Shown here: positions 3,001-60,000 of the stretch, piece after piece
Layout of the letters: every line of letters starts with the position of its first letter
Numbering within the stretch: the first letter of the stretch is position 1
NCBI GenBank assembly: GCA_021613535.1
Contig: CP075492.1
Location: 14,446,001-14,510,000 of the forward strand
Source of the DNA: Adineta vaga
Taxonomy: Eukaryota; Animalia; Rotifera
Reading direction: 5' to 3'
DNA length: 64,000 nucleotides
Translations under genes and position numbers: made by a program
Notes under the pieces: generated by a model
What the model saw: the letters and a program-made list of their open reading frames with translations, nothing else
The model's database searches: none
Told to the model about the DNA's origin: nothing

Positions 3001-6000
3001 GATTGTAACGGTATAATGAAATTTCCTGAATGTGAATTAAGAAACTTTTGCTTTGCTTGATCGAATGTATTTCTATCGGTTATTGTATTAGCTGTGTCGA
3101 GTTGAAGATGATAATGATCTTCATATAATTCAACTTTAAATTGTTGAGTAGAAGTTGGCATCAACATTTTCAATTGACATATTTCAACACCAAAGAATTG
3201 ACGTTGAATGTCGAATAGAAATGAACGAAGTTGCTTGTTTCTTCGCCACAATCGCAACAAAGCATTAATGTCATTTTTGTTAATATTTTCGTCTGGAAGA
3301 CGATAATTTTTATAAGTCGTATCACTATCAAAACATCTTTCAATTTCTGCTAGTGCTGTAGCACGCTCTGATGAATCTAAGCTTCGTGGCAGGTAAATAC
3401 GGTCGGAACAAAACGACGATTCTTTAATATTGCCATAGTTTATGAACTCAGGATATGACAAGTATCCTGAAAATATCGATGACACATTCAATGTCGTTCT
3501 CAGCATCTGTAAGTAATATGGACGAATCGAACATTCTGCAGAGATATAATGTAAAAAATCTAGTAACAATTCGAATCGTTCGATTTCTATTCGATTACTA
3601 GTATAAATGTTTGATTTAAACTGATTAGCTAATTTGAATAATCCAATCCAAATATTTTTCAATCCAAAATCGCTAGTTAACCATCGATTTAAAGGGAAAC
3701 AATTTAATTCGTTACTATCCTTCAATGTCATATAGCCATCAGTATATAAAGAATCTGAAAGGGTAATCAAATCGTAGTTCGTTTTCTTTAAATAGTTGTA
3801 ACCAATCGTTTGATATTGTTCCGTTAATTTGTCATTTAGAAGTTCTGCTTCTATTTGCTCGGATAATCGGGCAGTAGGGTTGTATGAATCGCGATAATTC
3901 CAATAAAGTTTTGCTAATAACCGTTCGTTATATCCGTTAGAGTTAATTATTTTTGATACTGAATTATTCGTAGATGATAAATACATGAAACTCAGTTTTT
4001 GACTAGAGATTAAAAGTTTTTTTGTGAGAAAATAATAACCAAAATGTTGTATTGAATATGGTAAACTTCGAAAATTCCAATCTATTCGTTCCATACACGG
4101 AGATGTATTGGATAATAGTTGACTTTCGGTGTGAGAGAAGCGATTTGTCTAAGAATATTTAATGAAAGTTCGTCATAAGGTTGATCTGAATAACAACCAG
4201 CGGAATTTAACAACTGAAAAGCACGTTCCATTCCTGTCATTCCTGTATACAAATCTGGTATTGGTTGAGATGTAAATGCATGTAATAAAGCTAAATAGAG
4301 CCATCCCATTGGACTATCAGTCGACTGAAGGATACGTAATCGATCATTTAGAGTAAAAATAAAGTATTGTCGAAGACCTAATTCTGATGCTTGTCGTTCT
4401 ATAGTCACAGTATGATAACTATCAGATACTTTGCGATGAGGACGCATATTTCCGAAAGGAACGATCAATTTTTGACATTTATCATATTTGTTCTCTTGAT
4501 TGGTTGAAGCTGAATATGCTGACAGCAAAAGACCCGATTGTAAGCCACTCAATGTTCCAAAAGATTGATCTTCAGTGATACACATGTCAGAATACTCACG
4601 GGAAATGATTGCATTCAGCTGCCCATTGTAAGTAAAACGGAGACCTAATCGAGATAAATAAATATGAACAATAGCATCTTGAGATGTTATATTGGATGAT
4701 GCGATGATCTGTAAAGCATTTTCTCTCATCATGTAAACATAAGGATAATCATCGAGACGAGAAAAGTATCGTGCAAATAATGTATAGAAAAAAGTAGATG
4801 ATTGATTAATGAGAATGTAAGGTTGATCAGTGTCTTGAGTGATAATAGAACCTGTTCGCATGAATAGCTTATATGATATATTGTTTAAAAAATCGTTATT
4901 TGCGAAACGTACAGGTCGGAAGAAAATATCATGCGTTTTTGTATTTCTCCAATGGCTATGATCAGATGCCAAATTATTAGGTAATTCTTTTGCAAAAGTA
5001 TTGTGTGGAATTAATTGATATTCTTCGTTTGAACAAATATGTTGTTCATGAATTATTAAATGTTGACTACTCTCATTGAAATGAAATTTATAATGAATTC
5101 TTCCATTTCCATGATACGCTTGTTTAGTAATATAAGTGTTGTATATTCCTGTTGCTTGTACTTCAAAGACATGATTTTCAAATACTCGAATAAAACTAGG
5201 ATGTGAAGTAATTTTATGTGGTAAATATCCAATCGTCATACCATTCACTAAAAATACTCCATTGAGACAATCGATGGATACAATCACTTCTTGATATCGC
5301 CCATCGTACCAGCCATCATAAATATTTGTATTTCGTTTGTTCCATTGAATATGTGTTGCATTGTCATTTTGTAGTACTGCCCAATACATTCTGGAAAATT
5401 CGTTTAAACTTTGATACGATGTCTTATCTATGAGTTTGTTTACAGTTGGTTGTATTGCTACGATTATGCGTCCACCCACTCGCATTATATCTCGCATGAA
5501 ATCATTTTTGTGAGTTTGATTCTTGTTTAAACTAATATTTTCATGCATCGTAGTAACTGTTTTTAATATAAACATCACATGTTCATTGGTGGATAATATA
5601 CAATGAACATGATTCGAATCTGTCGAGAATGTCAATATACAGGCAAGAGCAATATTAGTTATTTTAAGACGTAAAACTGCTATTTGATCAATTTCTGTTG
5701 TTGATAACGTTTGGATACTTTTTGTGAGCAATTCGATCCATCTATTTCCAATTTCACGACAACGCATTACCAATTTCGTCATTTCAGCTTCTCGTGTCGA
5801 ATTACATAGAGTTAAAATTCGCATTATTATGATGATAACAATGAATAGAACGAATTCATTTTGCCAATTATACTTACAATCATCTAAACGATGTTTTAAT
5901 CTCTCAATCAATTCGTCAACAAAATGATCTTTGAGAATTTGTCGATGAGATTCTGTACACCAAGCATGAGCAGATAAGTTATCGGTTGAAGTTACTGGAC

Positions 6001-8611
6001 CATACTGCCATAGAGAATGGGCAATTAACATCACTACACTTTCTTCATCGAATGCCAATGAATCTAATTCTAAACTGGACAAAAGATTCCACCATTGTAA
6101 ATGATGACCCGAACGAAATGATCCGAATTCGATATGTTGGACAGATTTCATTTTTGACGGACATTCCGATAATCGAGCAATAACTTCATTCTGAACGAAT
6201 CTGGTACTGTTGATTGCAAATTGTAAATGACGATAATTAGGATGAACTAGTCGAGGAGTTAGCATACAACATTCATCTTCAAAACTAATCGATTTATTTG
6301 GTGAGATTTGCACTTTGAGAGCATTTTCACACAAGAAACTGTCAGCAGACATTGATGTGATCAATGGTGGTGTGGAATAATGACTTTGTGTTAATGATTT
6401 CACTGATGATACTAATTTCACTTGACAATCAGGTGGGCCAGTGTAAAATGGACTTAGTTTCTTTGAATGAGGAGATACTTTCAACCATTCATAATAACTA
6501 TCGTGCGATGGTCTCGGCTTTGGATGATTGATAAATTGCCAAACAACATCGCGATAACATCTGAATTCACTAGGCATCTGTAATTCAAAAATCACAGCTA
6601 AAGCATCTTCGCGACGAGTCGGTAATGGACATTCATAAATTTGCACACGAATATTATTTGCTGTATTCACCAATGAACATCGCTCGCATACTCTATGATA
6701 TCGGTATGTATCACATATGCATGAGAGTCTTCCAGCTTCTTCTATACATTTTTGATATTTTTTTTTGGCAAGAGCAACTTCTTCAAGTTTATCTTGTTTA
6801 TCCTTTTTGATTTGTTCGTGAATTTGTCGAAGACTTTCATTCATCGATTCGGAACTTTCGGCGAAAACAACACCAAAAGCATTCGATTGATTGATATCGA
6901 AAATATCTGGATAGATTTTTTCTTTAAAACTATCGAAAAAGTTATAGAGATGACGAGCTCGAACCATATCATCTCGATTTGGTAATGTTAAATATTCGAA
7001 CAGTTTCAAAACATTGGGAATTTTGAGGGTGTGCAATTTTAGTCGTTCGAATCTTTGATCGAAACATAATTTTTCATGCATTATTTGAATAAGAGTCATT
7101 GAATTAAGAAGAAATCGACTGTAACCAATCGGATCTGTAGAATTTTTTTCTGAACCATAATGTTTTAAAGCAATGTTTTGATAAGCTTCGAAGAAATTCA
7201 ACAAGACTTCAAAACGATTTTTCTCGTTATTTCTTGATGCTGGTCGATTTATCCATTGTTCTAAATTCGATTCTATCCAGATTTCTAAACGAGTTAAGAT
7301 AGTGTCAGTTGAATAGTCGTATTGACTTTCTAAAACTTCAATCGATGGGATGTAATCGATTGTATTTACATCTGTTAATAATAGATCGGTCTTGGGGTTC
7401 GTATACGATAATCTGTTTAATTGGTTTAATTGATGACTTTTCAGATGCTCTTTTAAATCTGTACACAAATGTTGATAAGTATGAATATGATTAAGTTCTT
7501 GTTGAAGCTTCAACCAAGATTCATTGTTGTTGTTCTTGTTGTAACTTATTTCCATAGCTTGTGGATGCACAAATTTGGAAAGAATTTTATCTAGTTTTAT
7601 TTTAATACCACTTAAGATAGTTTCAATCCATTCGTGCATTTCATTGAACACCGTTTTTGATATAAGAAACTCGATTTTGTTCAGTCGTCGTGTTATTTTT
7701 CGAGTACAATAAACTGATAAATCTGTTGAAAGATTTTGTGTTGAAACAAAATCAGTCAGAAATAAAGCAATCAATGATTTATAGATAATACGACCGTTAA
7801 TTCCCAAATCTTTGGTTAAAATTAATTGAAGAATAACTTTAATTGTCATCCATAAACCAGAACGACGAAACGGTTGTTGAGCATCTTTCCAACGAATATG
7901 ATCACGATGTTTCTTTTGAAATTGATAAGTTAAATCAGAATTATTTTTCATTTTTTCTCCTTGTAATTGTGAAATCCACCATTGACAAACATAATGTGCG
8001 ATTGGAACATCACGTACTTCATCGAAGCGAGAAACTCCTTTTCGGGATTTTGAACACTCGATAGTATTCATCATGAATTCAACTAATAATTCACATTGAA
8101 TCGAAGATGTCAACAGTGTTCGATCACATAATCGATATGTTGTTACCGGAAAGCAGGACAAATGACTTTCGATAGATGAAGTTATCGTATCTGTTGGTAG
8201 TAAAACTTGCCATGAAGAAATCAAAGGTTGTTCGGTAGTATCATGATCAATTTCAATGAGAATTGCAGCATTTTGAGCATGAAAATAGAGAGGAAGGAAT
8301 TCGCACGATTGTAATTGTTGAATGGATAATTGCAAATTTGATGGGGTGCAGTTTTTTGGATTTTGTATTACTGACCAACGTTGGATGCAATTTATTAACT
8401 TGGGAAAAATTGGTAATATACATTTTTCATCGAATGATTTAAAGAATTTAATGATATATTCAAGTAATTTGTATTCATTTTCATGTTGATTTTGAGTTAA
8501 ATAATCTTTATCTTCAGATGTTGGTAAATTAATTGGCAGAAATAAATGATTTAAAATAGATTCTTCAATTGCTTGCAACCGTAAAGATTTTTCTTCATCA
8601 TTATGAAACAT
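1..8611 (-). CDS. Giant DUF6606/DUF3638/DUF3645 protein (fungal/protist-type, P-loop helicase-like core), >2800 aa, 3' end runs off the window; one frameshift at ~4098
   Basis: N-terminus has ILNHLFLPINLP and KKHRDHIRWKDAQQPFRRSGLW. After the ORF-track stop (YYPIHLR-VWNE*), a -1 frame continues as CMERIDWNFRSLPYSIQHFGYY. That frame contains MQMNMGEGKTSVI (ATG at 2309, in frame with ATG 4094), DESDEILHVKYQLIYTVG (~1855-1907), MAVPFRAKDVAAEKTEFGHIDVAIVLTQLSYYYSGL (~1310-1418), GFSGTND and ACMRMRRLG. No introns were seen. Likely start is ATG 8611. Confidence 0.85.
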
Positions 8612-9588
8612 ATTTGGAAAAAAAACCCAAACACAATGCAAGCAAAATAATCTTTCTCATGATATTTAAAACGACTGTAAGAGAAGTAAAACTGGGTATT
8701 TTTCGCGATAAGAAAGAGAAATATAAATTTTAAATGAAATACTCGTAATTCTACGATTCCAATTAATGTCTCTATTGACAAATAAAGAAGTTGATTGTGC
8801 GTTACAATATATAGACGGAAATACTAATAGTAAAATGAAGAATAAATAATTTCTTTCTTTTAATTGCCTCTATATAGTTAGTCAAAGTAAAAAAAAATCA
8901 GAAAAATGCATCTACTTTTACATAAAAATGTACATGTGGTCATATTTCGGCATCGTTGAATTTTCGGAATATAGAAGTCTCAATTCCTATTCCCGTTTCT
9001 TTCGAGATGATATCAAATATTAATAATCACTCGATGAAATTGTTCAATTAATTTCAGACAAAACTATCATTGGTTGTCGAAAGAAAGCTGGTATGATTTA
9101 ACATCTCCACGAATGTGACACGTAAAATAATCATTCTGTTATCTTCATTTGTCAAAGTGCTGTGTCGATCAAAAAAAGCAGTGTAAAGAATTAATTTGTT
9201 TTTATTTCTCATTTGATTATCTTTATTGCTATGAGAGAATAAGAACTATATGCATACATGATTAGATACAACATGTAATTCTTTTTTTTTATCATGAAAA
9301 GAAGAAAAAATATTTATCGTTACAATAGTCTTCTAGCACTTATTATTTTATAAATTAGATATATAGAAAATGAATAAAAAAAAGATTTAGTCTAATAAGA
9401 ATTTAAGAATATTGATTTGAATATTTTTAGCTACCTAGAAAAGAAAGACAAAGATCGTTTTCTACTCAATGCTAAATCTATTTATTTCTACATACGTGTA
9501 CTAGTTTTGTAAACTTTGAAGTTGTGTTACTAAAGATATTCATCATACATTCATGAAAATCTCAATCTTAGAATATATTGCTACTTAC

Positions 9589-10312: not shown

Positions 10313-12348
10313 CTGAAATTTACTAAACTATCTTTATTCTATTCAATATGCATATATATATATGTACAATATCAAATGTACAGAATATCACTACAGAAGA
10401 AGAAGAAAAAAGATGTGTCCTTCATGATTGAACGCTTGACTTAAGTATACTTCGTCTCTCTCTCTCATGGACGTGATAGATTAAGAGAAAAGAAAGAATA
10501 TGAGTATTTGATAGTCATTCAACACAGCAATATTATTTGACGTACGATTTTTGAATAGAAAACCGAGCTATCTAGCAATTTCATCGATTCTTTGATGATA
10601 TTAAGAGGTTAACTAAGTATATTTTATCTCTTGTTGATATTGATACTTATTCTTCATATCAAGGATTTATCTAGAAAAAAAACGTATTCAAAGCCTTCGA
10701 GTATATCCTTTCAAAAAGTAACGTTCATTAACATGATAAATGTCGATATGAATACTTCTCCATGATATATCTTTACTTCATGATCAAATTATTTCTAATA
10801 ATCTGTTACTCATTAAATGACAGATGACATGATAACTAAGTTATTAACGTACATATATATCTTATCGAATTGTACAAAAGAGATTGATATGAGTATTTTG
10901 ATTTATATCAGTACTAAAAAGAAGCATTTGATATTTATTTCATTATTAAACGATGTGAACACCAAAACTTCGTACACTTTCCGTTATCTTGTTAGATTAA
11001 TATATCGAAGAATAAATAGTTAGTTTTTTTTCCTATTTGAACAAATAAGAAAAATACTGAATGAAGACTTTCGTTAAAATCAGCTATTGAGGATGTGATA
11101 TTTCGATAAGTGTTAATCCATGTTTTGAGGCACGTTTCACATCGTAAAGAATTTGTTTTGTCTTATATTGATAAATGTTAAGTAGTGAAGAGATTTGATC
11201 AACTTATCGATAAATAGGTTTGTCAACATTCTTTTTCATTATTGTTGTAAAACATTTTCGTAGTTCGACGTACGTATACAATATCAAGGGTAAATGATCT
11301 ATTAATGCGGAGAAAATTTACAAATATTTAACTAACTTTTCGTTTCTTTAGAGAGATTCTCTGGCTCTCTCTCTCTCTAACAACAGATTTGTTAAGAGCA
11401 AAAAATAAAATACTTAAAGATAGTGTAAGATACTTTTTTTCTATAATAAAAGAGAATTTATGATTATTATCACTTTTATGTGAATAACAAGCGATTACGA
11501 TTTATTTCGATCAAGTTCGTATAATTAATTTCGCTTTTCTATTCGGTATGGTAGAAAAAGATTGAAAAGAAAAATGTAGAAAAGAGTAAGGAGAATATTC
11601 GACGGTTAGAATGTATGAATAAGAGAAATAATCTTCAGAAAATGAGAATAGACTTTATTAAATGAAAAATGAATAAGAATTCCATTCAGTATCTCAAGCA
11701 AAAATTGCTTGATGAAAAAATATCATTTTTTACTTTTTTTCGATTTAACGTCCTTTGCAACAACATAAGATAACCCTTTTGGGATTTAATGAAAGAAATC
11801 ATATTAGACGACGTAGATAATAATTTTGAAATAATAAAACAACAATCCTTATCTCTTTTATTATTAGGGATTTCTTTCTCAAAATCTTGAATAAAGTATA
11901 GTTATTGGTAAAAAAAACAACGAAAAACTAACAAATATATGACATCGATATCTGTTCATTGTATTCGATCGTACATAATCACATGATTTCAACTAATAGA
12001 AATATTTGACTTCATAAGCCAATCAGACTAGATATGTTTCAGACATCTTATCATAGTGTCCTCTGATGAATTAATTCTTCTCGATATTTCTCCACCTTTT
12101 CTTTAATCAACTATATATTCAACATTTTTTCTTTCGATCTTTTCGCCCGCATTCTTCTATTCACATCTTGTAAATTAAATTTTGATGAGGATAGGAACAG
12201 TAGGTATCGCGGTTAGTCAAAGAAAATCTTTTTTTTTCATATCCTACTGCGCGACTATTGATTAGTTCTTGAAAAGAAAGAGGAGTTGTCAGTTTTGTAC
12301 AGTTCAATGAAATATTTATATATTCATTTCTTCTGTAGATAGAGTGCT

Positions 12349-13731
12349 ATGTCGCAAATATTAAGTTTGATTGTAATAATGAGTATTATGTATCATTCGA
12401 TACATAGCTCTCCAACTGTCAACTCTTCTGATGTGAATATCACTACAACTACAGCTACAACAAAAAATAAATCGTAAGTCCATGTTTTTAGCAACTAAAT
12501 CTCTCAATATTTATTTAGACTTTCACCTCCGTATCTTCGACCAACATGGATCGATATTGATCTTGATATTGTTCGCACTAATGTTCAGAATCTCAAAACA
12601 TATATCGGTAATAACGTTCATCTGATGGCTGTGGTTAAAGCCAATGCATATGGTTATGGTATTATGGAAATTACGCGTACTGCATTATCCGCTGGTGCTA
12701 CTTGGATAGGCGTTGCCACGTTAGACGAAGCACTTGTTCTACGTCGTGAATTTGCAAAAAATATTCCAATTCTTGTTCTCGGTTACGTTCCTACGGAACA
12801 TTTATCACGAGCTAGTGAAGCAAATGTTACTGTAACGGGTATTTCATTGGAATGGTTTCAGGAAGTCGATCGTGTTATTCAGCAACCATTAGATTTTCAT
12901 CTTAAAATTGATACAGGCATGAACCGACTTGGTTGTAGAACAGAAGGCGAAATAAAAGCAGTTCTAGATATTGTTGCTCGCAATCAAAATTTACGTTTTA
13001 AGGGTGCCTTCACTCATTTTGCAACATCCGAAGACCTCACGAATAGAACGTATTTTTTGCGTCAACTTGATCGATTCAAACAGCTTCTGGATGTCATTCC
13101 GAATCGTACTGAAAAAATTATTCATTGTGCAAATTCAGGTGCTACTCTATATCATGCTGAAAAACCTTTCTATAACATGGTACGATGTGGAAAAGCATTG
13201 ACAGGTCCACCTAATGAACCATTGAAAAACAATTTGCCGATTTCACTTCAATCAGTCATTTCTCTTCATTCCGTTTTGAGTCTTGTCAAAGAAGTCGAAG
13301 CTGGTGAAAAGGTTGGTTATGCCGATAAATATACGACACCAACAAAGCAATGGATCGGCACGGTACCAATAGGATATGGTGATGGATGGCATCAAAATCT
13401 TAAACCATCTGGTGTACTTATCGATGGCAAACGGATGGAGATCGTAGGACGTATTTCAATGGATCAACTCATGGTTGTTCTTGATCGTGAATATCCTGTT
13501 GGAACTCGTGTAACTTTTATTGGTCAACAAGGCAATTTAACAATTACAGGAGATGAAGTTGCTAGTAACGCAAATATTCCTCGATCAGAAGTTTTCAGTG
13601 CAATATCAAGTCGTGTACCACGTATCTACAAAGACAGTAGAACAACTAGTGCTTCTAATAGTCAACATTCTTTACATGAAACTATCTATCTTCTAGGAAT
13701 AGTACTTTCTCTTTACTTTACTGCTAACTAA
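12349..13731 (+). CDS. alr: Alanine racemase-family PLP enzyme (bacterial type) with N-terminal signal peptide and C-terminal GPI-anchor-like signal, ~445 aa
   Basis: Exon 1 12349-12473, intron 12474-12518 (gtaagt..tttag), exon 2 12519-13731; phases match. Motifs: RPTWIDIDL, AVVKANAYG (PLP Lys), HLKIDTGMNRLG, THFAT, HCANS, VGY (catalytic Tyr), GYGDG, GRISMDQ, RVPRIY. Confidence 0.95.
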
Positions 13732-14030: not shown

Positions 14031-16124
14031 ATGTTACCTACTTCTTCAACTCAAGCAGCGGTATCATCGAATACAATCGATGATTGTTCGATTTGTTTAA
14101 ATGTTCTAGCACCGGGTCCACCAGTCTTAACATTGTCTTGTAATCATAAATTTCATTTACAATGTTTGGCTTCTAATATTCAAGCACGAAACAAACAATG
14201 CCCTCTATGCCGAGCAACTATTGATGCATCTGTGGTGCAATTACTTGCACAGGTACGAATCATCTACCAGTGCAACAACAACAACAAGTGCCATCTTTCT
14301 TTTTCGGTCATCGTTTTCCAACGCCTTCACCAATAACCATTGTATGTTATTTATCGATATAAAATATGATAAATCTTTATTATTATTTTTTATTTTATAG
14401 GCAATTCCTTCAGTTGAAGATCCAGTTGATGAAACTGCTGTACGAGATCTTTCTGCTCGAATTTCTTCAGCTCGACAAGCTGCAGCTGCTTCAGCTAACA
14501 CAGCTAGCAATCGTCCAATGATCACGACAACGACAACACTCGAATATGGTGCTCAAGCATTTCGTCCTCAATCAAATATTTATGGTCTAGTTACGCTTCA
14601 AGCGCCCCCAGAAATTGTATCATCTGCCAGTACATCATCAATCGCAAGCCGTGTTCCTGTTGATCTCGTTTGTGTTGTTGATCAAAGTGGATCGATGTCT
14701 GGTGAAAAAATGAGATTATTAAAACAAACTCTCGTTTATATAACTGAACAATTAAATGATCTTGATCGTTTAGCAATTGTTTCATTTGACACTTCTGCTT
14801 TTGATCGTTCACATGGATTAAAACGGATGAATCAACAAAAGTAAGTGACTTTCTTTGTAAAATACAACGAAATCAATATTATTGTTATTAAACCTTTTGT
14901 CTAGTCAACAAATTGTAACGAAAGCAATCAATGATGATATTCCTGATGGTGGTGGTACATACATCGGATGTGGATTAGAAATGGGTATCAATCTATTAAA
15001 TCATCGTCAAACAAAAAATCCTATTACTGCTTTACTTTTACTTACCGATGGTCAAGACAATGAAACACACGATTATACACAATTGTTAACAACATTACCA
15101 GCAGATGTTGTGTGTCATACATTTGGTTATGGCGCTGATCATATGGCTGCTTTATTAGTACAAATCGCCGAGAAAGGCAATAATGGTAGTTTTACTTATA
15201 TAGTAAGTTTGATCTTTTAAAAGTAGATAGATTAAGATAATTTTTTTGTTTTGAATAGGATCAAGAGCAAGCTGTAGGTCCAGCTTTTGCTATGACATTA
15301 GGTGGTTTATTTAGTTGTGTTGCACAGCAAATTCGAGTTGATATTGAATTTCATGGACAATATGCAATTACTCATGTACATTCGAAATATCAACATGAAC
15401 CAAATACGTTACCTTCGCAAAAGTTAACATTTAAATTAAATGATCTCAATGCAGATGAAAAACGAAATTTAATTTTTCAATTACATGTACCTGAAATCGA
15501 AGATAATCAAACTGTCGAAATGATTGATCAAGATATGATGTCACAAGTTGAACAATCAATTGATGTTTCTCAGACTATCGGTAAGAATCTATTTTCATTA
15601 TTATAAGAACTTTGCAATGTAATGTAATCTCTCTTTTTTTAGGTCAAGTCAGAGTCACTTATACTGATCCAAACAGTAATCAAACATTAACAACAATACC
15701 TGTTCCCTTTCAATTGATTCGAACACCACAACCAACTACTGCTGAACTTCAAGTCAATTATACACTTGATTTGCAACGAAATCGAGTCGAAACTGCTCGT
15801 GAAATCAAACTAGCTATGGATGAACATGATTATCGACGATCACGTGCCATTCTTAAAGCTCAAGTTAATAAAATCAAAGCAAGTGTATCCAGTAAAGATC
15901 CATTCTGTCTACTATTGATCCGAGATCTTGAATATCGATATCCATCAGAACATACCTATCGTTCATCACATCATAATACATACATGCAACATTCATCGGA
16001 ACGAGGAACGTACGCACCTGTAACTACATTTAGTTCTGCCGCATACTTAAGTCCTTACCAACAACAACAGGCCGTGCATTTTCAACAACAACAACAACAA
16101 CAAAATCATGATCAATCGTCATAG
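14031..16124 (+). CDS. RING-H2 finger + VWA + Vwaint-like protein (WAV3-like putative E3 ligase), 5 exons
   Basis: RING CSICL..LSCNHKFHLQCL..CPLC; VWA MIDAS DQSGSM and LLTDG. Exons: 14031-14252 (or to 14341 with a frameshift), 14401-14840, 14905-15202, 15259-15580, 15643-16124; GT-AG junctions are in phase. Confidence 0.88.
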
Positions 16125-16471
16125 TTTATTTATTCTCTGAACACTATTCATGACTTCGTTTTTTCGTATTTCCATGATTTTTTTAAAATAATTAACTTTC
16201 ATAGATAATTCTGTTCGAATAGTTCTTTTTTTTTACAATCTACCTTTCTTAGAAAGACGGTTCATGACTATATACGGATTAATATTAAATAATAAATGTA
16301 GGATTTTACTCGTTCATAGTAAAGAAATCATATGACAAATATTTGCATGAATGTATTAGTCGCATGATAATTCTTATTACTTTCTTTAAAATCAAGCATT
16401 TTCTTAAAGATTGTGGGTGCTACAGTTCCTATAAACTATGGGTATGCACCATTATCTTTCTTCTTTCAGAA

Positions 16472-17290
16472 ATGAACGTCAAGTCTGAAACTATTATTCA
16501 AATGACTAACGAATCATCGAATACAAATGTTAATGAAAGCAATTCTTCCGATGTTCTTCTAAGATTAATCAAAGCACACAAAAAAGAATCAATTCAGGAA
16601 ATTTTACTAATAACAATTATTACTGTTGTTTGCACCGTAGGAAGTATTATTTGTTTTGTCGTTGGAAAAGTTGTTGCTGAACGTTCTGAAGTTCTGATTA
16701 CACTATTAACTTTAGGTGGTATTCTATCAGCGAAAGTTCTTTTCCTCTTGCTCATCTTGTGTTATGGTATCAATTATTATCGCGTTGGTTTTCGTTGGAT
16801 GAATTATGCTCAGTATATCATATATTTGGATGGTGAACTATGGCAAAAACAAGTTGATTCACTTCGAAAGATTATTCATTCGAAACGTTCACGATTATGT
16901 TGTCGATCAACGAATTCAGAGCGTTTTCCAACGCACACATCTGGTCACATTGTTTTGGCAAAAGAAGGAATTATTATTGATGATTTTTTGATTTTTAAAT
17001 ATGAGAAATTTGTTATATATCGTCTTGATGTAATGGATGGTACAGCGGGAACAGACGTTAGTCTTCGATTGCTTCTTTGTCCTGATGATGCTGTACCAAC
17101 AGAAGGCTTTCCCGATAGAAGCAAAGAGAAAGAATTCGAACTCTATCTGTTCTTGGAACCATTTTGTCAAACACAAGAATTAATGAATATTCGCGATAGT
17201 ATTCTTGCCAATGCAGAGAAATGTCTTAATGCTACAGGGTATTTTAGACATACTCATAGTAGTGCACGGTCAAATTCGTTCAGTTTCTGA
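16472..17290 (+). CDS. Uncharacterised 2-TM membrane protein, copy 1 of a local 3-member family
   Basis: Two hydrophobic helices, then IIYLDGELWQKQVDSL..GHIVLAKEGIIID..FELYLF, shared with 18897-19721 and 23317-24092. Likely start is ATG 16472. Confidence 0.75.
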   Translation: MNVKSETIIQMTNESSNTNVNESNSSDVLLRLIKAHKKESIQEILLITIITVVCTVGSIICFVVGKVVAERSEVLITLLTLGGILSAKVLFLLLILCYGINYYRVGFRWMNYAQYIIYLDGELWQKQVDSLRKIIHSKRSRLCCRSTNSERFPTHTSGHIVLAKEGIIIDDFLIFKYEKFVIYRLDVMDGTAGTDVSLRLLLCPDDAVPTEGFPDRSKEKEFELYLFLEPFCQTQELMNIRDSILANAEKCLNATGYFRHTHSSARSNSFSF

Positions 17291-18896: not shown

Positions 18897-19721
18897 ATGG
18901 AAACGAATGTAAAGATAACCATCGATACTCAAGATCAAAAGAACATTGTTGTTCAAACTTCTGTACCGCCAATGAAATCTTCGAGTGTTATTTCAAGAAT
19001 ACTGACATCGCGAAGAAAAGTATTCACATTCGCCGCTCTTATAACATGGAGTCTTACTGTAATCTTCATTATTCTAAGTATCATTTGTTTCATTTTTATA
19101 AAGAATAAACCATCCAAGAATGCCATATATTTACCATCAATGTTATATGGAATAACTGCAACTATACTCGCTTTTATCATGCTCGTCTTTTCTTATTTCA
19201 TCTGTAGCGCTCGACAATGTATTTGTGGTTGGATACATAATTTTGAAACCATAATTCAGCTTGATAATGAAATCTGGCAACAACAAGTTGATTCAATTAA
19301 AAAAACTGTACCTCCTAAAATGGCTCGTAAACATTGTCTAACTGCAAATTTTGGTCGTGTAAGAAAACGTCAATATGGTCATATCGTTTTGGCAAAGGAA
19401 GGTATTGCTGTTGATGAACTCACTATAATTAAATATAATGCTTATGTGATACGTCGTATTGAGTTGATAAATAATACTGTACAAACAGGATTTATTCTTC
19501 GATTATTTTTGGTTCAACGTACAGTTATGTATGATGAGAAGTCTCTTTCAAATGATGAAATCACATTTGAACTCTATCTATTTATGCCGATTGGTATTCC
19601 AATTGAACAAGTGATTTATCTTCGTGAAAATATCCTTGCTAACTCGTACAAATGTCTCGATGCTCTTGGCTTTTTTAAACATTCCACAGATAATTATCAG
19701 CTACAAATATGCAATTCATAA
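18897..19721 (+). CDS. Uncharacterised 2-TM membrane protein, copy 2
   Basis: Intronless 274-aa ORF with IIQLDNEIWQQQVDSI..GHIVLAKEGIAVD..FELYLF. Confidence 0.8.
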   Translation: METNVKITIDTQDQKNIVVQTSVPPMKSSSVISRILTSRRKVFTFAALITWSLTVIFIILSIICFIFIKNKPSKNAIYLPSMLYGITATILAFIMLVFSYFICSARQCICGWIHNFETIIQLDNEIWQQQVDSIKKTVPPKMARKHCLTANFGRVRKRQYGHIVLAKEGIAVDELTIIKYNAYVIRRIELINNTVQTGFILRLFLVQRTVMYDEKSLSNDEITFELYLFMPIGIPIEQVIYLRENILANSYKCLDALGFFKHSTDNYQLQICNS

Positions 19722-54000: not shown

Positions 54001-57000
54001 CAAGTAGCTTTATTTTCAGTTTGTAATGGAAATTGTTCGACAATTCAACATATTACATGGAATGTTTATCATAGTACAATAAATTCAACTTCAAATTTCA
54101 CTCAATGGACAATACTCAATCAAACAACTTCTTATCAAAATAGATGGTTTTTTGGTATGTAATTTATAACTTCTTTGAAGAGATAATATTTAATTCATAT
54201 TCGTAGGTACAAATACAAGTAATTTCACTGCTACAAATCAATTATTTTCATCGAATCCTCATATTTACTTGTGGCGATTTGAAGTTGTCTATATATTTTC
54301 GAATGAAACAGGTTCAAGTTCGTTCAATTTTTTTATTAATCAACCACTGTCGAACGGTTCATGTTCAATCAATCCTCTCAATGGTACAACAACTAGTCTC
54401 TTTACTATTTCATGTTCCAATTGGTTCGCCGAGGATGAAATCAGAGATTATGCTCTCTACAGTATGTGAATATACTCGTTTACATTCAACCATTTTTAAT
54501 TTACTCTTTGTAATTAGTTCGGACAAATGATCCAAAAAAGAAAATGATTCTAGGTTATTCAGCAGTATCAACATTTCAAGTTCGATTACCACCCGGCGAT
54601 AATCAAACAGCATTAGTTCATTTAACTGTTCATATTCGAGATACATTGAATTGTATAACTGAATTTGATCTTTCACCAGTTCTTGTTGTATCAGACATGA
54701 CAACAATTACAAATTTAATTAATGATATTCATAGTACATCAGACAGAACAATGACAAATGGAATTAATCAATTACTTACAAGTGAAAATCAAAATATAGT
54801 TGGACAATTGATCACATCACTTTCATTCATATTCAATCAATGGCATTATCAAATGATTGAAAAAGCTGTTTCAAGTAAATGTTCATAGAATAAAATGAAG
54901 CTATTTCTTGTTAATTCTTTTCTATAGATGGTATCCCAGCTGTAACAATTTATATTTCATCATTCGATACTCGAAGTTTTCAGCAAGTAAGTTTTTCATA
55001 AAACGATTTTCTTTATTCTATAATACAATCATATTTCAACTAGTTGTCAATGTCATGGAATCAATCAGCATTTGTAGAATATCAAAAGGAACTTAATTCT
55101 CATGCAACTATTCGTGATTATCTCATTACATTCATGAAAAGATTTCTCATAACCACATCGAATAGTATTAAACTACAAGCATCATCATTAGCACAATTAA
55201 CAAAAGCAACAAATGAATTAACACGAGTAGCTTTAGTAAGATCTGAAAATACTTTATTTTTCTATTTATATTGAATTTCTACGTATAGATAATTGCATCC
55301 GATCGATGTTATCAATTAGGGATAGCCCTCGATTCAATGAGAACGAAAATTCCATATGAAGATGCCCAATTTGTAGCAGGTGACCTCCTTCAATGTGCTT
55401 CCAATCTTATAAGTGTATGTACTATTGCTCATACAGGCAATTAGAAGAGTGATTTCTGTGAATATATTTAGGCAGTGAATGGACCATTACAACAACGAAC
55501 AACTATCTTAGATTTAGACTCATCACGAGCCACAACATTGCCTGATGATTACGATACTGATCTCGAACTAGACTGGGCCAATCCACGTAAGTTTCTTCCA
55601 TTCCATATAACATCGATATAATTATTGTGAAATGTCTAGATTTATTTGCCGATGGAGATGACTTCTCATGGGAAACAATACAAAAAAATCGAAATATATA
55701 TTATCAAAAACATTTAGCTTATCAAATTAGTATTCAAATGAATAAATTGATCTCATTGTTAACTTCAACGTTAAATATTCATATGAATATTGGACAAAAT
55801 TTCTCCATTGAAACATCGCAAGTGTTAATGACATTAGAAACAGTATCTAGTCAATCACTCTCAAATTCATCCACGAAACAAATTGGAAATAGTCAAATTC
55901 ATCTACCTTCCAATGGCACTGTAGATCTAAATAAGAGTGAAAAAATTTCTATTCGAGTAAGTTCTCTATCAATTTGTGAATTTGTCTATCGATGATCTTT
56001 TTGTTTTAGTCAATCTTGATGCCATTAGCTGAATTTGGTAACTCTTCGTTATCATCAAATACCAATCTTTCTCGATCGATATCATTTTCTTTTCTTGATC
56101 ATAATCAAGAGGAAATTCCTATTGAAACAACTATGAATAAATCTATTGAAATCATCATCCCTCGTGATCCTAATCTCATCGTTTCACCAATGATCCTACA
56201 AAATGCAACATTAATGAACATGGCACCTCATCACCTCAGTTTTCATTATCAGTATTTCAATCTGACTACTTCACTCCCAATGTCAGTTCATTGGAACATT
56301 CAACCATTGAATGTATCTGTTGCTTATTTAATTATCTATCGATTTGATCAAATACCACAACTGAATAGTTCCATCAATCAAATCGATGGATGGACACTGC
56401 TGTGTCCTTCTATATTGACAAATGAAAGTGTCTACACTTTTTATATTGATAATCAACATACGGTAGGTCATCAAGCAGTGATCTTTGGTGTAAGAGAATT
56501 GAATGCAACAGAGATGAATGAAAGATGTTCGAATTCATCAATTACTAATCCTCCCATTACTAATGAACGATATAATTTTACTTCAAATTATCAATTCAGA
56601 GTTTATACATCAGGTTGTTATTATCTTGACAAAAACAATCGATGGAAATCTGATGGATTATTAGTTGGTTCATTGACAAATTACAATCAAACACAATGTT
56701 ATTCTACGCATCTGACAACGTTTGTAGGTAGTTTCGGTGTTTTACCTGAAACAGTCGACTGGAGTTATGTTTTTGCTAATGCTGATTTTACGAAGAATCT
56801 AACTGTTTATTTGACAGTGATTTGTGTTTGTGTGATCTATATTATTTTGATCATCTATGCACGTTATTATGATAAGAAAGATGTGGAGAAATTAGGTGTG
56901 ACAGTATTACCTGATAATCACAAAGAAGATCAATATTTCTATCAGATCATTGTATTCACTGGTCAACGAACAAATGCTGGAACAAACTCAAATGTAAGCT

Positions 57001-60000
57001 GATGAAAAAGGAATACTCTGTCAGTTTCTGTTTTTTGTAGGTTCACTTTGTGATTCATGGCAATGATAATGATACGCGAATTCGAACATTTACTGATTCA
57101 CATCGTCGAATTCTTCAACGTGGTGGTGTTGATGCATTTCTCATGAGTGTTCCTAAATCATTGGGCTTATTGAATTGTATTCGTATTTGGCATGACAATA
57201 GTGGCAAAGGTTCATCATCATCATGGTTTTTGAAATATTTGATCATTCGTGATCTGCAAACAATGGACAAATATCATTTTATTTGTCAACGATGGTTAGC
57301 TGTCGAAAAAGATGATGGAAAAATTGAACGTGTTTTATCAGTAGCAAGTGAATTAGAAAAACGTCAATTTTCATTTGTTTTAGCCAAACAAACGTATCAT
57401 AGTGTTTCGGACGGTCATTTGTGGTTTTCAATCTTTTCTCGTCCACCATCAAACCGCTTTACACGTGTTCAACGATGCACATGCTGTTTTGTTCTATTAT
57501 TTCTTTCAATGTTTCTGAACATCATGTACTACGACTTATCAAATGAAGATAAATCAACAAAGTCAACCAGTATGTCATTCGGTTCACTCTATATTACTCC
57601 TCAACAAGTATGTTTGAAATATCTCATTCATTTCTTTTTACTAACCTATATCTGTCTTTTGAAGATAATCATTGGTATGATTGTTGAATTGTTTGCATTG
57701 ATTCCAAGTTTGTTCCTTGTTCAATTATTTCGGCGTCTTCGTCCTCGTCAAAAACAACAATCATCGATACGACAAGCTTTGTATAAACTTAAATCACTTC
57801 CTCAAGACAGTCTTGGGAAGAAGAATGTAAAATCACCATTCATATTTCCATGGTGGTGTATTTTTATTGCTTATGGATTATGCATGCTCATTATTGGTCT
57901 TTCCATTTTATTTATTATTGCTCGTGGAATTGAATTTGGTGATGAAAAAGTACAGAAATGGTTAGCATCGATTTTGAGTGGCTTCTTCTCTTCAATTCTA
58001 CTTACCGAACCATTAAAAGTAACATTCGAAACTTTGAATATTTAAATAAAATTCATTTCATTGTTGTAGATTATTTCATTAGCCATCTTCTTTGCTTATT
58101 TTTGTCGAAAATCAGATGATAATAAAGAAGCAATTGAGTTGTTAGATGACGATCAAGTGATATTAAATCATGATGAGGAGTATCTACATACAACTGAGGT
58201 CAATTTGAAGACATCTCCGATCCGTACTCATCGTCTGAATGAAAGCGAAGTCAATCGTCTTCGTCATTTACGTACGAAAGAAATTCAAATGTGGTCTGTC
58301 ATTCGAGAAGTCTCATTATATTTATGTTTTCTATCACTTCTCTGTGTGGTGATTTATTCAAATCGTGATTCGAATGCATTTTTACAAGTGAATCATCTTC
58401 GAAAATATTTTCTCAATTCAAGACAAATTGATTTAGATTATACCAAAGTTCGTTACTTTTGTTACAGGTTTTTCCATTAACAATATGACTAATTTAGGTT
58501 ACGACAATACAGCAATACTGGAATTGGTTGGAGAACAGTTTTGTAGACAATCTTCGCGCACAAGAATGGTATAATGGTGAAGCACCTCGAAATTTAAGTG
58601 GTTTTATTGATGATAAATCCAATCGATTGATTGGATGGGCAACTATGCGACAATTACGTGTCAAGTCTAAGACGTGTCAAACACGAAATCCAATATTTTC
58701 TATGTGTCAAGGTGATTACAATCTTCTTAACAACGATGAAGATTCCTATGCACCTGGATGGAAAAATGAAACATTACAAATCTATAGTTCATTTATTCAA
58801 CAAGCATTTACATATCAATCGGCTGATACATTGGATACATATATACGTGCTGGAGATCACAGTACTTATAGTGGTGGTGGTTATGTATATGAATTTCGTG
58901 GACGTATATCTGATCTTCGAAGTAATCTTTCTCAACTTCATCAACTTGGATGGATTGATAATCAAACACGAGCTGTGATGATTCAACTAACATTATACAA
59001 TCCCAATGTTCAATTGTTTACTGCTGTTACACTTCTTGCCGAGTTCATATCATCAAGTGGAATATTTACTTCTGTTCGTTTTGAACCAATTAGTTTTTAT
59101 GGTAATTTCGTCTCGTTTTTTTTTCGATATATCATTTCGTTTCTTTTTTTATTCTATCTAAGCATTCACATCAGTGTATCAATTGGTTTGTACAATTATT
59201 TACATGATATTGATCGTGTATTTCATGTGGACAGAAATTCGATTGTTATATGAATTGAAATGGAAATATTTTCAGCGATTTTGGTCTTATGTGGAAGTTG
59301 GAATTATCGTTTGTTCATGGACAAGTGTTGGTATTTATATTTGGCGTTATCATGAATGTCAACGAATTGGCCAATTATTTAAAGAAACAAATGGATATGT
59401 TTATATTAATTTACAATTAGCATCCTATATCAATGATATCTTAATATATTTATTGAGTTTTTGTTGTTTTTTTGGAACATTTCAATTGATCAAATTATGC
59501 CGTTTTAATCAACGTTTTTGTTTATTTATTCACACTCTTCAATATTCTGCCAAGGAATTATTATCATTTTCGATGATGTTTGCTTTTGTGTTTATGGCAT
59601 TTCTTTGTTTATTTCATTTCTTATTTATTTCCAAATTGCTTGAATGTTCAAGTTTGTTAGGCACAGCACAGATGTTATTTGAAATGACATTGATGAAATT
59701 TGATGCACATCAATTGAGTGACGCTGCGGCATTTCTTGGACCATTCTGTTTCAGTTTATTTATTGTTTTTGTTGTGTTTATTTGCATGAGCATGTTTTTA
59801 TCTATTATTGCTGATAATTTTCGTCGCGCACGAGAACATATAGACGATAAAACATATGGCATATTCTCATTTATGTTAGAAACATTTCAGCAACGGATAG
59901 GTAACAAATTTAGAAATGAATTTGATTGAAAGTAATTAATCAAGATCTGTTTAGGTATAAAGAAAGCACCAGGAATAGGAATTCAAGCAGAAAGAAACGT

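Follow-up and report, generated by a model that had tools for sequence, protein, structure and literature searches.

A bacterial-type racemase gene of the bdelloid rotifer Adineta vaga with a putative signal-peptide exon and a GPI-signal-like tail

RESULTS

Gene layout at the racemase locus

We analyzed a 64,000-nucleotide stretch of DNA (the window) from contig 3 of the six-contig, 100.8-Mb Adineta vaga genome. A gene for a bacterial-type racemase lies on the forward strand of the window and consists of exon 1 (12349-12473) and exon 2 (12519-13731). The deposited protein (I4U23_015506, P0001) has 445 aa. The features of the gene are listed below, together with the evidence for each of them.

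11491..11514, + strand: 3' end of a non-coding 5'UTR exon (24-letter contig overhang in run X1, exact match; one contig only)
11515..12338, + strand: 5'UTR intron, 824 nt, GT..AG (overhang before 12339 in the run X1 contig)
12349..12408, + strand: signal-peptide-like region, residues 1-20 (hydropathy and conservation across orthologues)
12409..12473, + strand: Ser/Thr-rich stalk with sequons at residues 25, 30 and 40 (sequons kept by class A orthologues, defined below)
12474..12518, + strand: phase-2 intron, 45 nt, GT..AG (spliced in runs X1 and X2)
12519..13629, + strand: fold-type-III PLP racemase core, Ala_racemase_N and Ala_racemase_C (domain matches, model overlay)
13630..13731, + strand: GPI-signal-like tail, 33 residues and stop (composition rule, orthologues, model)

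Exon 1 had been proposed in an earlier note on this DNA as an exon missed by the ORF track. It translates as proposed, and the deposited model likewise has 445 aa. Similarity searches used each exon separately, with the exon-2 part of P0001 as the local query. The same note singled out the 12473/12519 junction for a check in RNA-seq. The GT-AG joint is indeed present in contigs of two transcript-like runs, X1 and X2, which both come from a single study and are only presumed to be RNA. In the same runs all four introns of a neighboring gene are skipped and intergenic DNA has no coverage. The 5'UTR exon match is directly followed by a donor GT at 11515, and an acceptor-like AG also occurs ~8-12 nt upstream of the ATG in four orthologue loci (L006, L007, L009 and L012). 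We take the ATG at 12349 as the start because it is preceded by an in-frame TAG and by the upstream 5'UTR exon. The in-frame TAG also rules out a coding exon further upstream.

Contamination as a source of the gene is ruled out by the chromosome-scale contig, the splicing and the synteny with a RING-VWA gene in A. ricciae, where this gene also follows the orthologue downstream. Neighbors in the window are ordinary spliced genes. Bacterial affinity, location on a host chromosome, splicing and synteny in relatives are together the marks of a horizontally acquired and domesticated gene. The RING-H2 and VWA gene of the window itself (14031-16124, + strand) has four introns spliced in RNA and is syntenic in A. 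ricciae.

The enzyme core and its substrate entrance

Both Pfam Alr domains are recognized in exon 2, as is TIGR00492 (338 bits against a cut-off of 168). The closest solved structure is that of Geobacillus Alr (E 2e-93), which the predicted core structure (pLDDT 89) overlays at TM 0.86. Equivalents of Lys39, Tyr43, Lys129, Arg136, His166, Ser204, Arg219, Tyr265, Tyr284, Met312 and Asp313 are all kept. Both catalytic bases are thereby intact: the Lys39 equivalent is encoded at 12637 and that of Tyr265' at 13318 (residue 309, invariant in the alignment; residue 313 is the Tyr269 equivalent). Compared with A. ricciae, the core is judged to be under strong purifying selection, codon positions 1+2 differing by 0.07 and position 3 by 0.42. 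The enzyme is probably an active racemase.

The word 'alanine', as used in the earlier note, has to be loosened. Tyr354 is the gate for strict alanine specificity (PMC3485190, PMC4542195), and its equivalent here is Ser (13585); the position is non-Tyr in 12/12 tail-bearing members. The changes at the entrance are clade-wide (Y354S, I222K/R, Y225T/M, R290Q and N353R), and the rotifer clade has one residue inserted near 171. Among 149 diverse homologues, position 354 is Tyr in 123, 222 is Ile or Leu in 123, 225 is Tyr in 135 and 290 is Arg in 145. The 354 position holds Thr in Lyr and Ala in Bar (PMC3485190), Asn in VanT and Pro in BsrV (PMC4542195), and the Y354N substitution raises serine activity 62-fold with alanine activity unharmed (PMC4542195). 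With Ser in place of Tyr354 and an entry channel remodeled throughout the clade, a strict 'alanine' label is doubtful. On these residues a broadened racemase appears likelier than a strict alanine racemase, and there is a good chance that the substrate range is wider than, or other than, alanine. Since Tyr354 also contacts the PLP phosphate, and Arg290 and Tyr225 are lost, the activity could be low.

Relatives, phylogeny and other alr copies

By their C-termini the relatives fall into two classes. Class A proteins have a tail of 29-38 residues, whereas class B proteins have 15-21 residues after the core and a Bacillus-Alr-like end. Class A includes the gene at 12349-13731, A. ricciae, A. steineri, three Rotaria and metagenomic proteins. 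In a quick, core-only tree the rotifer-type proteins group together on a single branch (SH-aLRT 100), and within it the tail-bearing class A is again one branch (SH-aLRT 98). A lone class-B label inside the class A branch belongs to a C-terminally truncated protein. In this tree the rotifer clade has a long branch and is a neighbor of the Bacillus group rather than a part of it.

Two other alr copies are found in A. vaga. One (L002, G000:C3:12307103-12308185) is a class-B copy broken by stops and frameshifts, in which a trace of the donor site of the first exon is left; of the exported racemase, A. vaga seems to have retained only the putatively anchored form. The other (L003, G000:C3:13763600-13764760) lies on the same chromosome as the anchored-type gene, is only 28-29% identical to it and has a Bacteroidota MurF-Alr fusion as its best model. 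It contains a 49-nt internal intron and has neither signal nor tail. Because L003 is unrelated and Bacteroidota-like, two separate alr acquisitions in A. vaga are likely, which would have provided an exported enzyme as well as a cytosolic one. The A. vaga Alr that was published and assayed is reportedly Bacteroidetes-like, and L003 is presumably a better fit to it than the signal-exon gene; the published Alr may thus be this different gene. With a second, unrelated intron-containing alr in the genome, the link that the earlier note drew from the present gene to the known active bdelloid alr is not supported and may not apply. A bacterial A. vaga alanine racemase with an intron is mentioned in a passage of PMC5169069.

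Signal exon, stalk and core sequons

The reading of exon 1 as a signal-like sequence followed by a stalk with three sequons held up, and Adineta and Rotaria orthologues share both the exon and the intron phase. Two of the sequons (NSS and NIT) lie within exon 1, while NKS is completed across the splice joint. Cleavage likely occurs after Ser20 (I-H-S / S-P). The signal region is 70% identical to that of A. ricciae. In eight related loci, and apparently also in L033 of Rotaria sp. Silwood1, the first exon ends at the same phase-2 intron position; loci with a matching first exon include A. ricciae, A. steineri, Rotaria magnacalcarata, Rotaria sp. Silwood2 and three metagenomic ones. Complete first exons begin with Met and a hydrophobic core whose best 10-mer scores 2.6-3.2; the likely cleavage point has a small residue and then X-Pro, and a stalk rich in Asn and Thr comes next. 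Many deposited models of the relatives lack the signal exon, which we recovered by reading the DNA. In one relative, which no longer has the intron, the signal is fused in frame, and another intronless branch has a short signal immediately ahead of the core. At the conserved intron of the A. steineri orthologue (L007:3955) there is an apparent GC donor.

The signal region is hydrophobic in all seven other full-exon loci checked, A. steineri class B excepted, where it is degenerate; P0039 has no signal at all. The A. steineri class B proteins (L014 / P0022, P0023, P0027) keep the first exon and 5-7 sequons, with a signal region that is not hydrophobic. In P0039 and P0050 (L031), of the same clade, the N-terminus is hydrophilic, sequons are not in excess and no intron is seen; this branch may represent a cytosolic state.

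We assigned the ER signal peptide by a hydropathy heuristic and by conservation. In this AT-rich genome ~5-11% of ATG-open stretches are hydrophobic by chance, and a mean hydropathy of 3.0 in an N-terminal 10-mer is reached by ~5% of ATG-open 40-mers. Hydropathy that may arise by chance, whether at the N-terminus or in the tail, is not decisive singly; what is decisive, as far as sequences can tell, is conservation across orthologues. By this measure the signal exon has kept its position and its character in two genera, and it is under selection.

The core contributes evidence of a different kind. It has sequons at residues 144, 217, 237 and 381. The catalytic cores of 53 rotifer-clade proteins carry on average 4.19 sequons versus 1.82 in shuffles, although these counts share ancestry and do not amount to ~50 independent trials; in 67 bacterial homologues the mean is 0.97 versus 0.96 in shuffles. 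Columns 217, 237 and 381 hold a sequon in 35/52, 30/52 and 38/52 clade members, respectively, and each in 0/67 bacterial homologues. The middle residue of the column 217 sequon varies. Three new core sequons that appear to have been gained and retained are hard to explain for a cytosolic protein, and we regard export of the racemase through the secretory pathway as very likely.

The C-terminal tail

The tail runs in the order of polar linker, omega candidates (Ser419 or Ser421, at 13648 and 13654), spacer, uncharged hydrophobic end and stop. In the predicted structure it is a low-confidence linker and then a helix, and the stretch from the last core strand to the omega site is short, at 6-9 residues. 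We looked for small omega and omega+2 residues 17-31 from the end, a spacer, an uncharged hydrophobic end and no cytoplasmic tail, which is a simple rule of our own rather than a trained predictor. The racemase tail conforms to it, compared with 2.9% (strict) or 4.4% (relaxed) of 1,359 open stretches from the same genome. An uncharged hydrophobic end is present in 11/12 class A tails (10/11 members other than the present one; best 12-mer hydropathy 1.64-3.12), and each of these tails has its small-residue triplet 19-31 positions before the end. The tail that follows the Alr core (33 residues) and its GPI-type pattern, both claimed in the earlier note, are thus borne out.

Glypicans are a GPI-anchored family, and the two glypicans of the A. 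vaga genome have tails whose style and scores (2.62 and 2.23) are like those of the racemase. The genome also encodes the GPI transamidase genes GPAA1 and PIG-K. As 19-residue membrane spans the tails score poorly, with unfavorable insertion sums in 10/11 by a crude, unweighted calculation. A type-I membrane anchor is disfavored by the short hydrophobic stretch, the missing cytoplasmic tail and these rough 19-mer sums.

Between the two Adineta species the tail sequence drifts near-neutrally (0.47 vs 0.48), which would fit a cleaved signal and also a dispensable extension. The first half of several class A tails has kept a resemblance to the bacterial C-terminal arm. For this reason we consider the tail to be an extension of the old arm, and the GPI tail seems to have grown from a C-terminal arm of Bacillus type. 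The signal exon predates the tail. The earlier description of a bacterial Alr with a GPI extension is right about the tail pattern, but the tail does not look like a wholly new addition. A check of both termini in orthologues, also proposed earlier, found the signal exon in Adineta and Rotaria and the tail pattern in 11/12 class A members, with exceptions in the P0011 tail and in the signals of P0039 and A. steineri class B. Signal exon, core sequons and tail properties are three independent lines, and because of them we consider secretory targeting and a GPI-type tail to be supported. GPI anchoring of the racemase is probable on these patterns. The class A protein of Rotaria sp. Silwood1 (L033 / P0011) has a tail of the usual length that is hydrophilic, and a loss of the anchor is possible there.

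DISCUSSION

Proposed role and alternatives

We propose that a Bacillota-derived alanine racemase gene was acquired once by a bdelloid ancestor and that a signal-peptide exon would then have put the racemase into the secretory pathway. In one subclade, which includes the gene at 12349-13731, the C-terminal arm would have been lengthened into a GPI signal. The protein would enter the ER, be N-glycosylated and transferred to GPI at Ser419/421, and would reside as a PLP-bound homodimer on the outer cell face. There it may equilibrate D- and L-alanine, and likewise some larger amino acids, at a surface in contact with food, for example the gut lining. A racemase drives D/L only toward 1:1, so the direction would be set by context. 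Because bacterial food is D-rich and animal uptake takes L-forms, the net flux would run from D to L, serving salvage and detoxification; on a gut-facing surface of a bacterivore this seems the simplest reading. The main step that the proposal leaves to explain is how PLP would be loaded in the ER; plant alliinase, a PLP enzyme of the secretory pathway, is a precedent. The whole chain, from export and GPI anchoring to the salvage role, is offered tentatively, at slightly less than an even chance. The chances are about even that we are dealing with an exported family of PLP racemases, with soluble and GPI-anchored branches and a rebuilt channel, that sets the D/L amino-acid balance at the animal-microbe interface, possibly with repeated refitting of bacterial enzymes as GPI surface proteins.

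The same GPI-anchored ecto-racemase might instead be useful in the L to D direction, making D-amino acids that act against bacterial growth, biofilm or spore germination, or that feed a D-amino-acid oxidase making peroxide. The widened entry does resemble the changes in Bsr, Lyr and VanT, and DAO-family genes are present in the genome, although the family is broad and the point weak. Released D-amino acids would, however, be diluted in open water, and the main text of PMC11258130 does not name the racemase among infection-induced genes. We regard these two uses, taken jointly, as unlikely. A somewhat less likely alternative keeps export but gives up the anchor: the tail would be dispensable or processed, and the enzyme would be soluble in the gut lumen or digestive vacuoles, as class B may be. 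Class B indeed combines signal exon and sequons with a bacterial end, the P0011 tail has lost its hydrophobicity, tail drift is fast and some tails are only moderately hydrophobic. Yet 11/12 tails keep length, uncharged hydrophobic end and omega-type triplet despite little identity, against a background of 3-4%.

Equally improbable, in our judgment, is that the protein is no plain racemase and has another PLP reaction or substrate (serine signaling, acidic amino acids, peptide-bound D-residues) or binds peptidoglycan fragments. The clade-wide Y354S, I222K/R, Y225T/M, R290Q and N353R changes with the insertion near 171, as well as a PLP supply outside the cytosol that is unexplained, speak for a changed function. 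Against it, the catalytic bases and PLP contacts (K39, Y43, K129, R136, H166, S204, R219, Y265, D313) are kept, and VanT, altered at the same position, still racemizes alanine (PMC4542195). By far the least credible is an ordinary cytosolic racemase whose termini are chance products of an AT-rich genome. Hydrophobic stretches do arise by chance (~5-11% of ATG-open and 3-5% of C-terminal stretches), but the signal exon is conserved across two genera and is under selection, and the core has gained sequons.

Relation to known systems

Bacillus and Geobacillus Alr (TIGR00492; PDB 1SFT and 1BD0; B. anthracis 2VD8) share with the rotifer protein the fold, 43-51% identity, Lys39/Tyr265, a carbamylated-type Lys129, Arg136, Arg219 and what is left of the C-terminal arm. 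The rotifer gene differs in its signal exon, intron, sequons, GPI-like tail, Ser at the Tyr354 position, entry changes and animal host. VanT has a 10-pass-type membrane domain, and its enzyme part lies on the cytoplasmic side. Like the rotifer protein, it is Alr-derived and has its specificity widened via the Tyr354 position, and it is membrane-attached (PDB 4ECL). Membership in VanT is ruled out by Ser in place of its Asn at 354, the missing N-terminal membrane domain and a score of 258 bits against the VanT cut-off of 460. BsrV, Bar and Lyr are exported PLP racemases that, as in the rotifer, have a small residue at the Tyr354 position (PMC3485190, PMC4542195), but they are a distant lineage (E about 1e-25 vs 1e-93) and are periplasmic, not anchored. 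They have Asn for Leu137 and lack Lys129, whereas the rotifer protein keeps both Leu137 and Lys129 (PMC3485190), which rules out membership in the Bsr/Bar/Lyr group.

Secretion retargeting of transferred genes is a known theme. To our knowledge, known animal racemases are cytosolic. Exported racemases are known in Trypanosoma (PMC4417235): the T. cruzi proline racemase TcPRACA is likewise bacterial, horizontally acquired by a eukaryote and secreted (PMC4417235). It differs in being PLP-independent, of unrelated fold, from a protist and without GPI. No signal peptide was found in its trypanosome homologues (PMC4417235). A survey of transferred D-amino-acid enzymes in eukaryotes, with Adineta outside its scope, reported none with a signal peptide except a fungal oxidase, and hence no such transferred racemase (PMC5169069). 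Our literature search, mostly of open papers, returned none on a secreted or GPI-anchored bdelloid racemase and none that combined racemase, GPI-anchored and D-amino acid. If the proposal is true, a bacterivorous animal has gained a direct means of acting on the D-amino acids of the microbes it lives with and of its food. Few PLP enzymes belong to the secretory pathway, and its ecto-racemase would be one of them, implying PLP loading there. The locus would also illustrate stepwise domestication of a foreign gene, by a signal exon, glycan sites and an altered channel, and then by an anchor made from the old C-terminus.

Other open frames in the window

On the reverse strand, 4082-8641 holds an open frame of 1,519 aa with DUF6606 at the N-terminus. 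Two forward-strand paralogues (16343-17290 and 18897-19721) are 34% identical, have two hydrophobic segments and have no Pfam match. At 56016-58045 (+ strand) a GPS motif is followed by a PLAT domain, a polycystin-1-like layout.
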